Shown here: positions 608 to 40,469 of the stretch, in pieces
Position numbering within the stretch: position 1 is the stretch's first letter
How the letters are laid out: the number at the start of each line of letters is the position of its first letter
From: Octopus sinensis
Taxonomy: Eukaryota
NCBI RefSeq assembly: GCF_006345805.1
Contig: NC_043002.1
Span: forward strand, 28,706,001-28,770,000
Reading direction: 5' to 3'
DNA length: 64,000 nt
Translations under genes and position numbers: made by a program
The notes under the pieces: generated by a model
Told to the model about the DNA's origin: nothing
What the model saw: only the letters and a program-made list of their open reading frames with translations
Databases searched by the model: none

Positions 608-707
608 TGGCAGCGGTTCTTATCTGGATGCTTTGGTGGGTAGTCTCTTTTGGCTTCATAGCATGTTGATTGGTACATTGCTTTGCAATCACCTGCATCT
701 ACTTGTG
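608..707 (-). CDS. 6-Cys-domain cluster unit 1, exon A only (gene continues beyond the left edge)
   Basis: Exon 707-608 (100 nt; tttag|, |gtgtgt; phase 1->2) encodes xQVDAGDCKAMYQSTCYEAKRDYPPKHPDKNRC(Q). Bases 1-160 are homologous to the intron preceding exon B in units 2-6, so exon B should lie just outside the window. Confidence 0.8.
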
Positions 708-952
708 CTAAATTAGATATATTTTAGATATTCAATTTTCAAATATTTTAAAAAACGAAATGTCACATACTTTTTAACAAATTTAAACATTTTTATCTCC
801 TGTGAATCAAAGTTATTTGTTGTCACGTATAACACGGAACTGGAAAATGGAATGAATTTCATAAAACTTAGTAATGTCGTACACAAAAAATAGTTTGGCT
901 GCTGTTGCATTCTAAAATGTAGATAAAAATAAATAATGCTTATAATTATTGA

Positions 953-1162
953 TTTCAAATTTTGGCATAAGACCAACAGTTTTGGAATAAATTTTGGTAA
1001 GTCGACTGCATCGACTTCAGTGCTCAAGACCTACTTATTTTATTGACCCATAAAAGATAAAGTCGACATCGTTGGAATTTGAACTCAGAAGGCAAGACGG
1101 ACGAAATATAGCTAGGCATCTCGTCCGGAGTGCTGAATAATTCTGCCAGCTCATCGCCTCGG
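953..1162 (-). mobile_element. tRNA-derived SINE (Octopus-type) with 19-bp target-site duplication
   Basis: Body with gtcgac...ggaatttgaactcagaa...ctgccagctcatcgcc; TSD taatgcttataa(t/c)tattga at 934-952 and 1163-1181. Confidence 0.88.
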
Positions 1163-1431
1163 TAATGCTTATAACTATTGAACTACTGTTTATATTCTGG
1201 CTTTTGAAAAATGTCGTTAATTGTAAAGGTACATTTAGGTATTCTGCGAGCTTTTATACTGTCAATGCTCCTATGACTTGATTTTGTTTTACAATTTCTG
1301 TGTTGTTTCACGCTGCCAATCAAAATAGAACATAGAGATGACCGTGAGAATGACTAGTATGCATATTTAGCAAAATCTAATAACCTGGAAATGACCATTC
1401 TTTAAGAAACTATGAGTGGAAAGAAAAAGAG

Positions 1432-36814: not shown

Positions 36815-38169
36815 CTAGAAATTTAGTAATAATATATTTTAACCTCCTAAATATAGGTAACATACGGAGGAACTATTATATGAGACACTTAAATTACAAT
36901 ATTTAATTCTGCTCTCAAGCTACCGGATGGTATTCTGTAGCAAGTAGATTATCGATGGAAGAGATGATTTTCTATTCTAATTAGCTTTTGTGATATCATA
37001 TATTGTTTTTTTCATTTATATTTAATAGCCCAACCCCACAGAAAGACAAAGAAACAAGTGAATATTATAACAGAAACTGTTTTTTTTTTAGTTTTTTGTT
37101 GTTATATTTGTATGAACATATAACATTATCGAGGAATCTTACAATAATACCTTCAAGTTCGGAGTAGTTTATAAACATATACGTAATTCTGTTAATATGT
37201 ATTTGTATTTTAAAATTTGTTTCATTGGTTTACAGTGCTATGCAGAAGTCTATTGCAGAAACCACAACCTGCGATAGTATAATGCTACGAGTCAGGATCT
37301 AGGTAGATGATTGGTATGTTGTAACGTCTGACTTGTGTGAAATTGTAACTATTCGTTTCGAAAATTGCTTGATAATGTGTGTTCCATTTGTCTAGAGATT
37401 GTAATATCTAGTGTGGCTGATTATGATATTTTGAAAATAGTTTAGCATTATTACTGTAATAAAACGCTCGATGGCAAATTGTCTGTTTTCTTATACAAGA
37501 CTATGTAGTTTTGTATAACAAAACGTATTTAATATCTTTTTTCTAGAACATAGTAATATAAAGATACGTCCTAGTGTTTTAAATCTTATGTACATAAATT
37601 TTCATTACATATCACAAAGCATATAGTGACGCTCATTACAATACAGCATTTTCGTCACTAATCACGCATCATATATAGCTGTGCATAAAGTTGTATACTG
37701 CACCAGACACATAGATGCTAAGATGATCACTCTTACTGATCTTATTAGAGCTTGGCAAAATTTGAGACTGTGGGAATTGTGACACAGTACATTATACTGT
37801 GTGAAGTGTTATATACAATACTTGAGACACTATGTATAGTCTTATATAACGTCCTTGAGACAGTGTGTAGTTGTATATACAGTAATATGAACACAATTTG
37901 CAAACGTACACATTGTAGTTGAGATACTTTACGTGGTCTTTCATACAAATAATCATTTTTACGTGGTTTAATTAGCAAAATATATATTGATTTATACGCA
38001 GTATCCATAACCTACGAAAGTATTTTAAACTGCTGGAATTATCATTTAAATTTTCTACAAATCACGTTGTATTAAAATGTATTGAAAATGAAAATACCCA
38101 TTGCATGATTTAGTCCTCCATAGTTAAGAAGTAAGGAGCGTCACACCTAGAACAGCTTTGTTCTTTGCT

Positions 38170-39640
38170 TTCCTTGATGAAGGCTCATCCACGAATATAT
38201 CATAACATCATTAATTTGTTTCGGGAAAGACGACTAAGACGGGTTACTGGGCATTATGCTGAGAGTGAGAACATCATTTCTAACAATAACAACACCTACA
38301 AAATTATTCCAGCTTGTTAAAAACCTCACTTAGTTGATAATCTCAAAGTAATGATAAAACTGGAAAATTCCTCTCTGAAATAAAGGTAACATTACGAAGG
38401 TCGTGATGTTTAAAACCGAACAGTTAGGAGAGAAGCGATTCAACTGTGCTGAATGCAGAGGAATTTTACTAGATAACAACGTATACATTCGAAAAAACGA
38501 AGCTAGTGTATGATTACTGAAATATGGGAAGTCAGTAAACGGTGACATCTCTGGTCAGCAGCTAATGTGCAAAAGAGGAAAAGAGAAGCCGCAATGTAGA
38601 TCCTTACATTCTACGCCTCATCCCCTGGTTGGCTAGTGAAATTCCTCAAATACCTTCATTGACTCCAGGAAGGTTATGATAGAGATCATTGACTTCAAGA
38701 AGGCTTATGATAGAGACTAACGGAAAACTTTTATGCACCGCAATAAAGAGATTGAAAACAGTTGACATATACAATCAGATTTGACGCGATGCTCCATTGC
38801 CACCGTAAGAAACGGGTAGTGCACTCACTCTGCCCCACTCTTCAACGACTTCAAGGAACAAAATATAAACAATACCTTTAAAGACAATCTGGGTACACTC
38901 ACCAATGGAACTGGAAAGCTCAGAAACCTAGGTTTTTGTGACAACATTGATCACAGAATTAACTGACGAGAAAACTAAACTCATAAGCAATGCTAACGGC
39001 TTTACCCCAGTAAGTAGTTCTGCCCATTCACAAGAACATATAACTGAAATCAATCATAAATGTTATTAGAACGTGAACAGATGTAGTACTTGTGGAACAT
39101 GTGTCAATGACTGAATTAACCAGGCTAAAACGAATATAAAGGTCAGAAATATCTCTTTTAGCCAAAAGATCCGATTTCTGCGAAGTAAATTTGGTCTCCT
39201 CACGTGCATGACAAACTGACAGAATCGTATCTTTGCTGGTATCAATGCATCAATGCACCGATAACGGTACTATTAATGATATATTATCACAGATTCTTAA
39301 GCATCTTCCACTTGGACTTCATCCAAAACGACCAAACGGCGAAGCTATCCAGTATGACATTGTATGACATGAATTCCTCCATTCACGCTGATGGAAAGGA
39401 AGCTGAAATTTATGGTATGTAATGAATTTTTGTGAGCTTTTGAAGACAATTCTTCAAGGAATTGTAGAGGAGAAAACAGAGTTGTCCGGAAAGAAAAAAT
39501 CTTGGGTGAACAACAAAATATAATTAACAGGAACATTATGAGTATTGGAACCGAAGTGTTCAGTATAGAACAGACCAAAATATGCCCTATGACGACATCG
39601 CAACTACTTAACCACCAGAATCTGGGGACTAAACGTATGT
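38170..39640 (+). mobile_element. Degenerate RTE-clade LINE
   Basis: IDFKKAYDR (~38690), GFCDNID, and a 3' end resembling RKLKF.G.V.....LKTILQGIVE...KKSWVNN; many stops. Confidence 0.65.
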
Positions 39641-39801
39641 AAAATATTGTTCACATAATCTGAGGCCATATTCTGATTTCAAACGTTAATTTCTTTAGAA
39701 TGCGAAGTTAACACCCATGGATATGAAGTGAATTTGTTTTTGAAGTAGTTCCTCGACACAATGTTTCTGTTAATAAGACCAAATAAATGACCATATCTTA
39801 C

Positions 39802-40469
39802 CACAACACTCATTTTCAAACTTTTCCGCGAAATATTCTTTGCATTTCTCACCTGCATTACCACACCTTCGATATGCGACTAAACGTCTGAAATATATAT
39901 CCGTGAACATTTTTTTCGGTGTTGAGAAAATGGCTAACATACTAGACAATACTGTGCATTATATATATATATAGGGAATTTAGGTGCCACTAGGGTTAAG
40001 GACAGTTTGAAATATCTACCTGTACACTCGAATATTTCAACTGTGTCTGATTTTACTTTTTATCTTAACGATGCTTCAGATAATTCCTTTACTGAGATAA
40101 ATCAACAACCTGATGAAAACAGTTATATATTATATAATCTACAAATCAATTGTGAGCCTTTTCCATCATTATATCGATGTATGTTATATTAATATTACGG
40201 TATTATACCAATCAATGAGAGTACACTGTTGAAAAACTATACTCCTAGTAACGATTTTTAGATTTGGGTCAGCCTAAAGAATTTTTAGCATTAAACAATT
40301 ATGATATTTCTATATATGTAAATAAACATGTAAATATTTGATGTAGGATAATTGTAAGTAAGAAAATATATGTACTTGCAGTAACCAAAGTAAAGTTCGA
40401 AGTTGTCTTTTACGATATGAGGACATCTTGCAGTATATCTTTTATTGCAGTAATTCGCCAGAGCAATTC
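39802..40469 (-). CDS. 6-Cys-domain cluster unit 8, single divergent domain with a seventh Cys
   Basis: Exons 40469-40376 and 39887-39802 (GT-AG, same phases): GIALANYCNKRYTARCPHIVKDNFELYFGYCKRLVAYRRCGNAGEKCKEYFAEKFENECC. GIALA resembles the end of a signal peptide. Confidence 0.83.

Follow-up and report, generated by a model that had tools for sequence, protein, structure and literature searches.

The window analysed here, the whole stretch of 64,000 nucleotides at positions 28,706,001 to 28,770,000 of Octopus sinensis contig NC_043002.1 (G000:C6:28706001-28770000 in the 2.72-Gb assembly), carries on its minus strand 27 short exons that are real and that probably belong to one long gene, at most to two, for a secreted protein composed of tandem six-cysteine modules. 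In the original prediction, which was made from the letters of the window, the same exons were read as a cluster of eight genes. A single gene is favored here because the exons form an uninterrupted frame, because only one exon of the window encodes a signal peptide, with a TATA box upstream of it, and because the paralogues in Octopus bimaculoides are single proteins. The word probably applies to this best explanation as a whole, comprising the intact multi-module secreted array, the fold of its module, its family and the selection acting on it.

Structure of the exon array and of its probable gene

The window is AT-rich eukaryotic DNA with a G+C content of 27-42% along its length and about 33% overall. 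In a six-frame motif scan, the core of the type A exons, [YF]P-x3-PD-x3-C, gave 12 matches and that of the type B exons, CA-x6/7-C-x3-F-x7-C, gave 13, all on the minus strand, along which the two cores alternate strictly; the plus strand gave one core match, which is spurious and lies inside a microsatellite. With a looser pattern two divergent A exons were added (40469-40376 and 36814-36715), which brings the totals to 14 for type A (91, 94 or 100 nt) and 13 for type B (86, 89 or 92 nt). Each of the 27 is preceded by AG and followed by GT. The A exons run from phase 1 to phase 2, so that their first two bases complete a codon and they end two bases into another, and the B exons run from phase 2 to phase 1, beginning with one base and ending one base into a codon. 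Borders, phases and the absence of stops agree exactly with what had been predicted, out to the outermost positions at 40469 and 608. Splicing yields 13 complete modules and a fourteenth half-module that leaves the window, and their alignment returns the predicted consensus, C-x7-C-x2-A-x3-YP-x3-PD-x3-C-x-RL-x2-Y-x2-CA-x6/7-C-x3-F-x7-C, in which the six cysteines and R31 are invariant, P20, D25 and F51 are present in at least 90%, and the centre reads C-x8-C-x7-C (x6 in short-type modules). By our own arithmetic, about 0.075 stops per random codon are expected at ~33% G+C, which leaves a 30-codon exon open with a probability of ~0.1 and all 27 exons with one of ~1e-27; a chance origin is excluded by these odds, and 14 of the exons are also kept in O. 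bimaculoides.

The length of each A+B pair is divisible by three, which makes the pair a phase 1-1 cassette whose duplication or omission leaves the frame intact. Joined in genomic order, the 27 exons form one open frame of 837 codons. The start of this frame was sought along the whole minus strand as an exon with M-[KR], a hydrophobic core, a phase-1 donor matching at least 6 of 8 consensus bases and at least 8 codons. Five candidates passed, none of them within the array, and only that at 44271-44235 fits; the other four lie further upstream, three of them with weaker donors, and none is like the signal peptides of the family. The coding part of this predicted exon 1 (44235-44271, minus strand) consists of ATG, MKGSMYICLLIV and a final G before the phase-1 donor GTAAGT; the first module lies 3.8 kb downstream. 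Its junction with A1 reads MKGSMYICLLIVGIALA followed by NYC, a typical signal peptide that resembles those of relatives, such as MKDCISICLLIAGLATA followed by NDC in the O. bimaculoides protein P0002, so that the predicted extracellular nature of the product is upheld. A scan set at 15 codons or more found no consistent start exon and would miss this exon of 12 codons, and tblastn searches with the N-termini of P0001 and P0002 did not find it, the queries being too short. Upstream, a putative promoter can be read from the sequence, with a TATA box, TATATAAG, ~65 nt before the ATG (44336-44343, minus strand) and a cyclic AMP response element (CRE)-like motif, TTACGTCA (44360-44353, minus strand).

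The two paralogues are consistent with this gene model. P0001 (LOC128248050, 704 aa) and P0002 (LOC128248155 X2, 540 aa), both of O. bimaculoides, consist of a signal peptide and 11 or nine modules, respectively, are 48-50% identical to the window protein, and repeat its order of modules from the first, which ends in CC, and the second, which has KHALILHP, onward; in tblastn searches both are collinear along 40 kb of the window. The predicted gene model has the same secreted repeat architecture, a signal peptide and tandem modules in one polypeptide.

The 3′ part of the gene was read by translating 20 kb beyond the window start. Exon B14 (92 nt, with AG and GT borders; G000:C6:28705730-28705821, minus strand) is followed by modules 15 and 16 and by a truncated, B-like terminal exon with a stop codon (G000:C6:28691456-28691563, minus strand; L004 5456-5563). 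The gene model comprises ~34 coding exons over ~59 kb of the minus strand (G000:C6 ~28691456-28750271), from window position 44271 to 14.5 kb past the window start. The O. bimaculoides orthologue of the 3′ part (P0027, LOC106874482, 401 aa) ends in the same short exon; its reading there, QNCTMKKNEKCSKEI and stop, differs by one base in a run of A from that of O. sinensis, which runs to CFY and stop, so that either the C-terminus has truly changed or the assembly contains a homopolymer error.

With the full B exon included in module 16, the model protein has a signal peptide and ~16 modules of 55-63 residues, ~1,006 aa in all (mature form 989 aa, 117 kDa), with 97 cysteines, a pI of 8.4, 10.2% Lys, 6.6% Tyr and one N-x-S/T sequon. 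It is thus not one of the small proteins originally expected: the array runs past the window, and the paralogues too have 9-11 modules. The odd cysteine is the seventh, unpaired one of module 1, in its terminal CC, and is shared by P0001 and P0002. The linkers between modules (5-9 residues, n=15) start right after Cys6, and dibasic, KR, RR or RxxR sites occur in 0 of the 15 (examples are GLAEPET, QPVDN, PGKDS and PEKDD). Processing sites and a membrane anchor are both lacking, and the array would remain intact. Between the unit of modules 8-9 and that of modules 10-11, introns still align at 76%, which points to a fairly recent tandem duplication of two-module units, and growth of the array appears to have proceeded through tandem duplications, both of exon pairs and of units composed of one long and one short module.

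Several observations weigh against a single gene of this length. P0002 stops after nine modules, and the window gene may therefore likewise stop after module 9; in-frame read-through meets stops 4-7 codons past the donors of B9, B11 and B15; no relatives or transcript fragments of 103-327 aa were found in the protein database search; and existing annotations split the locus into the fragments P0003, P0005 and P0027. The end of P0002 and the read-through stops would fit an array shared by two or three transcription units or major isoforms, as would the isoforms given by NCBI for family members (LOC128248155 X2 and LOC128249887 X1-X6) and the phase 1-1 design with the exon-pair skipping that it permits. 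Such sharing could take the form either of a nine-module secreted protein like LOC128248155 with a separate 3′ unit of modules 10-16, or of extensive skipping of exon pairs that makes the number of modules variable. It is rather improbable, in that the scan revealed no internal signal-peptide exon and no promoter-like first exon, and in that modules 10-16, if they had no signal peptide, would make a cytosolic protein with unpaired cysteines, which is implausible. Furthermore, the only annotated 5′ end within the array, that of P0027, is a 20-nt ATG mini-exon that has no untranslated region and adjoins a 1.1-kb assembly gap; for these reasons P0027 looks truncated at its 5′ end, and the mini-exon looks like a patch of gene prediction and not like a real promoter. 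Eight tandem genes, each encoding one to three modules as a small secreted protein, are highly unlikely: the exons are indeed grouped, with longer introns of 3-6 kb between groups, long and short modules do alternate in two-module units, and members of 1-4 modules with their own signal peptides exist elsewhere in Octopus genomes, but no start exon lies between the groups even in the scan down to 8 codons, the phase-1 GT donor of every B exon fits the next A exon so that the whole set is in frame, the paralogues of 540 and 704 aa are single collinear proteins, and the long introns are filled by transposon fragments.

Under the single-gene model, the exons on the minus strand of the window are placed as follows. 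A1 (94 nt, 40376-40469), found with the looser pattern, carries the end of the signal peptide and the first half of module 1, with degenerate YP and PD motifs, and B1 (86 nt, 39802-39887), found in the motif scan, carries the second half, which ends in CC. Module 2, of the KHALILHP type, begins with A2 (100 nt, 36715-36814), again from the looser pattern. The motif scan and the exon borders then define B2 (92 nt, 35442-35533), A3 (100 nt, 33159-33258), B3 (92 nt, 31614-31705), A4 (91 nt, 30818-30908), B4 (89 nt, 30011-30099), A5 (100 nt, 28146-28245), B5 (92 nt, 27208-27299), A6 (91 nt, 26575-26665), at which RefSeq LOC118763774 begins, B6 (89 nt, 24429-24517) and A7 (91 nt, 23631-23721). From B7 (89 nt, 22204-22292), which is followed by a 6.2-kb intron with transposon fragments, every exon has an orthologue in O. 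bimaculoides, and all of them were found in the motif scan as well: A8 (100 nt, 15881-15980), B8 (92 nt, 14854-14945), A9 (91 nt, 14579-14669), B9 (92 nt, 13512-13603), A10 (94 nt, 10069-10162), B10 (92 nt, 9339-9430), A11 (91 nt, 9047-9137), B11 (92 nt, 8021-8112), A12 (100 nt, 3641-3740), B12 (92 nt, 2855-2946), A13 (91 nt, 2619-2709), B13 (89 nt, 1749-1837) and A14 (100 nt, 608-707), which is the first half of module 14.

Public annotation of the ~59-kb gene, which the present model corrects, is limited in O. sinensis and O. vulgaris to short fragments, in part chimeric. RefSeq LOC118763774 (XP_036359395.1, O. sinensis, 147 aa) corresponds with identical sequence to modules 6, 7 and part of 8, and starts at an intronic ATG before exon A6 (window 26575-26723). 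The O. vulgaris protein CAI9724703.1 (P0003, 205 aa) is a chimera of exons identical to those of the window, some of them read in the wrong frame, in which A6 is joined to B10, A11, B13 and then to later sequence out of frame. The O. bimaculoides orthologue is split at the assembly gap.

Repeats are frequent around the exons. A trinucleotide microsatellite that reads as poly-Thr or poly-Leu (window 416-600) lies in the intron directly 3′ of the A14 donor and is positionally conserved, since it occupies the same place in O. bimaculoides (L010 ~22150-22330). A dispersed repeat of ~215 nt, possibly a short interspersed element, occurs at window ~940-1160, 3430-3603, 7273-7391, 7456-7629 and 26335-26444; it has more than 50 genome copies on many contigs, 68-80% identical, several of them in introns of the gene. 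Inspection of translations by eye revealed reverse-transcriptase-like frames, probably of retrotransposons without long terminal repeats, at 18664-19700 (plus), 43545-43943 (minus) and 46894-47910 (plus), and mariner-type transposase-like frames at 21233-21655 and 55425-55901 (both plus). Such transposon fragments explain the G+C-rich stretch at 18-22 kb and the 6.2-kb B7-A8 intron. Long, impure microsatellites that read as YIYIYI or CVCVCV (22374-22870, 51900-53200 and 58700-63550) give rise to many false long open frames on both strands. Beyond the window, in L003 (G000:C6:28696001-28706000) and L004 (G000:C6:28686001-28696000), two large minus-strand retroelement insertions were seen by eye in the 3′ introns: one after module 15, with reverse-transcriptase and GIY-YIG-like motifs, looks Penelope-like, and one between the two exons of module 16 resembles a long interspersed element, with reverse-transcriptase motifs.

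Predicted fold and probable relatives of the module

For a single module, AlphaFold2 with an alignment of 30 modules predicts with high confidence a three-helix bundle (predicted local distance difference test score, pLDDT, 94.6; predicted template-modelling score, pTM, 0.79), whose helices span residues 2-18 (with a kink at Cys2), 28-41 and 45-58 and whose α2-α3 linker has ~3 residues. The six invariant cysteines are predicted to form three disulfides per module, in line with the helical, disulfide-stapled protein originally proposed. In a pair of one long and one short module both bundles are kept (pLDDT 86.5, pTM 0.55); the latter score indicates no fixed orientation between modules, which would be joined by their short linkers in the fashion of beads on a string. 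Foldseek searches of the PDB with the one- and two-module models returned nothing significant, the matches being generic helical hairpins, ferritins among them, at E > 3, a weak null result given the little power of Foldseek on helical bundles of 60 residues. The structural comparison proposed with the original prediction thus gave a confident fold but no significant neighbor in the PDB, and a sequence search of the PDB with two modules found nothing meaningful.

The module is likely to be a very divergent relative of the N-terminal domain found in RGM proteins. Of 33 single modules, 12 match the Pfam family RGM_N (PF06535) at E < 1, the strongest at 2e-4; it is the only Pfam family matched by more than one of the 33. 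The family member P0004 (four modules; family profile E 2.8e-35) reaches 37.9 bits against RGM_N, above the cut-off of 24.2, as the sum of four weak stretches, and with either family profile the four highest-ranking PDB sequences are N-domains of RGMB or RGMC (E 0.05-0.46). The aligned stretch, D-x2-[FY]-C-K-x-L-x2-Y-x2-C-x7-C, runs in register from Cys3 to Cys5. The RGM N-domain is extracellular and has three helices and three disulfides (PMC7354924). Three helices are also predicted for the module, and the central C3-x8-C4-x7-C5 is common to it and to RGM_N (PDB 4UHZ, 4UI0, 4BQ6 and 6Z3H).

This relationship has to be weighed against several results. The alignment is weak and local, covering ~24-27 residues at the PDB E values given above; the joined window protein (803 aa) scores 19.5 bits against RGM_N over seven stretches (E 1.2e-3), below the cut-off; hhalign of the family profile with the octopus's own RGM N-domain gives the same register at E 0.04 but a probability of 1%; and no RGM chain appears in the Foldseek PDB listings for the one- and two-module models. 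The octopus's own RGM gene (G000:C2:164242613-164242819, L006) has RGM_N in one open frame (40.2 bits), followed by the autocleavage motif CGLFGDPHLRTF. Because the octopus RGM_N lies in one exon, whereas every module here is split by an intron after Cys3, a shared intron position lends no support. The spacing also differs, with x7 between C1 and C2 in the module versus x4 in RGM, and x11 between C5 and C6 versus 21-22. RGM has one N-domain copy as opposed to ~16 modules, and the window protein lacks an RGD/RGN loop, a von Willebrand-D-like region carrying a GDPH site, and a glycosylphosphatidylinositol (GPI) signal; consisting only of a signal peptide and tandem modules, it was rejected as a member of the RGM proteins as a whole. 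Other weak RGM_N matches in the genome (L007 and L008) were discarded as noise. The family called unrecognised in the original prediction has, accordingly, no dedicated family model or literature, but it does have this weak, consistent link to RGM_N.

The remaining domains considered fit less well. One small member (P0008, A0A0L8GPX5) bears the UniRef label 'GDNF/GAS1 domain-containing protein'. GDNF/GAS1 (GFR-alpha-like) domains are all-helical, disulfide-rich and extracellular, and are often arranged as tandem copies and carried by GPI-anchored proteins. GFR-alpha domains, which have five helices and about ten cysteines, exceed the size of the module with its three helices and six cysteines. 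The Pfam GDNF model (PF02351) matched neither P0008, nine further small relatives nor the 33 modules at E <= 1, and it did not match the window protein at E <= 10, so that membership was rejected. The exclusion of Kazal, Kunitz, ShK, pacifastin, saposin, OBP, CHH, insulin, Ly6 and attractin, which had been made from cysteine patterns, agrees with the Pfam searches, none of these being matched at E <= 10 by the window protein or at E <= 1 by the 33 modules.

In architecture, there is a likeness to structural repeat proteins. Secreted cysteine-rich repeat proteins ('SCREPs') are reported to have a comparable tandem disulfide-rich architecture. Octovafibrin is an octopus egg-tether protein with 29 EGF domains and, like the window protein, has a signal peptide and many small disulfide-stapled modules arranged head to tail with short linkers (PMC12723725). 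The Lys and Tyr contents of the window protein and its odd, possibly cross-linking cysteine add to the resemblance to octovafibrin and the SCREPs. The module is helical and is not an EGF domain or a knottin, so that the likeness is one of architecture and not of homology.

The family in Octopus and its divergence

When a profile of 30 modules was searched against 1.84 billion representative proteins, 25 proteins were found at E <= 0.001. Those looked up are from O. bimaculoides, O. sinensis or O. vulgaris, with one exception, a bacterial low-complexity lipoprotein that looks spurious. The family is thus apparently restricted to Octopus in the databases searched, as the proposal of a lineage-specific, uncharacterised family would have it. 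Its members are named 'uncharacterized', 'hypothetical' or 'secreted protein', apart from the one GDNF/GAS1 label, and searches of the literature by accession, LOC number and keyword found no paper on the family or its loci.

Two architectures are found. Giant secreted arrays form a cluster of 3-4 genes on the chromosome of the window, and proteins of 78-373 aa with 1-4 modules are clustered on another chromosome; a signal peptide is present in most of the small members, and many end, at the C-terminus, in a short hydrophobic stretch that is putatively GPI-anchor-like. O. sinensis matches to the giant proteins are confined to contig C6. They comprise an orthologue of P0001 (LOC128248050) at G000:C6:28005888-28068787 on the plus strand, with 70-82% identity per exon; partial matches at G000:C6:28090538-28104330, also on the plus strand and some with stops, which may be a partial or decayed copy; an orthologue of P0002 (LOC128248155) at G000:C6:28633286-28673773 on the minus strand, with 73-84% identity, ~18 kb downstream of the window gene; and the window gene itself (G000:C6 28.691-28.750 Mb, minus strand).

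Divergence was measured against the P0027 locus of O. bimaculoides (L010), over the 14 exons from B7 to A14, 434 codons in an ungapped alignment. The orthologues of B7, A8, B8, A9 and B9 follow one another, in that order, within the 10 kb upstream of the annotated start of P0027, and A10 has its counterpart a short way into the annotated part; from B7 to B16, exon order is shared with O. sinensis. All 14 comparable exons are equal in length, keep their AG and GT borders and are free of stops. Over the 434 codons, identity is 73.7% at the amino-acid level and 86.7% at the nucleotide level, and all 42 cysteines are kept. The long, mostly intronic orthologous alignments are 84-89% identical, and the exons are accordingly no better conserved than the introns.

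This divergence is distributed unevenly. Scaffold positions (Cys, YP, PD, RL, Y and A; 94 in number) show 4.3% changed residues, and the other 340 positions 32.4% (Fisher p = 1.7e-9). The ratio of nonsynonymous to synonymous divergence (dN/dS, Nei-Gojobori) amounts to 0.17 in the scaffold and to 0.94 at the other positions (bootstrap interval of the latter versus pooled dS, 0.73-1.57), and the non-scaffold dN of 0.179 (0.147-0.214) compares with an intron divergence of ~0.13. Among paralogous modules inside the gene, dN/dS is 0.32-0.99. The scaffold is kept by selection, and change of the surface is close to neutral in rate. With its dN/dS of about 1, the surface is compatible both with positive selection and with a simple lack of constraint.

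Possible roles of the array

From its architecture and evolutionary pattern, the protein probably has an extracellular role in recognition or in structure. It would be secreted and remain intact as a long multivalent extracellular array with diversifying surfaces, and the unpaired cysteine of module 1 could join two molecules into a covalent dimer or serve in cross-linking. Recognition, venom and reproductive proteins show a pattern in which the disulfide scaffold is conserved and the surface changes at a neutral or faster rate. Such change argues against the binding of a conserved ligand such as BMP and fits either recognition of fast-evolving partners, which might be microbes, prey or gametes, or a matrix or material component in which only the fold would matter. 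For the latter role, the Lys- and Tyr-rich composition and the architecture of the window protein recall tandem-EGF structural proteins such as octovafibrin (PMC12723725).

An action like that of RGM, in which the modules would bind ligands of the BMP/GDF type and the multivalent array would present TGF-beta family ligands or act as a decoy for them, is unlikely. It draws on RGM_N as the sole recurring sequence match and on the N-domain being the BMP/GDF-binding part of RGM (PMC7354924). The 32% surface difference between the two Octopus species, at an approximately neutral rate, misfits a conserved ligand, the RGD/RGN loop and the α2-α3 linker used by RGM are unconserved, and the octopus has an ordinary RGM gene with a GDPH site (G000:C2:164242613). 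RGMs are GPI-anchored, and the putative GPI-anchor-like tails of the small relatives would also suit this role.

Cleavage of the protein into ~16 single-module peptides, which would act as pheromones, toxins or antimicrobial peptides, is very unlikely: tandem small disulfide-rich units do stand behind one signal peptide, as in some venom and pheromone precursors, but the linkers are short, start right after Cys6 and have no dibasic sites, and a precursor of small toxins or pheromones was rejected on this ground.

For the intact array, a more specific proposal may be made tentatively, at well below even probability. A single RGM_N-like three-helix module would have been amplified, as an octopus invention, into the giant secreted proteins, with surfaces under diversifying selection and with combinatorial skipping of exon pairs, to give hypervariable multivalent recognition with GPI-like counterparts at the cell surface. 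If this is true, the arrays would be a recognition system, whether immune, prey-directed or gamete-directed, and the small relatives with GPI-anchor-like tails would be its cell-surface counterparts.

What appears to be new here is the tandem architecture of an RGM_N-like module, seemingly limited to Octopus. The analysis defines an uncharacterised family that comes in two architectures, whose fold is predicted with confidence and whose origin is plausibly of the RGM_N type, and this family is a candidate for lineage-specific cephalopod biology.

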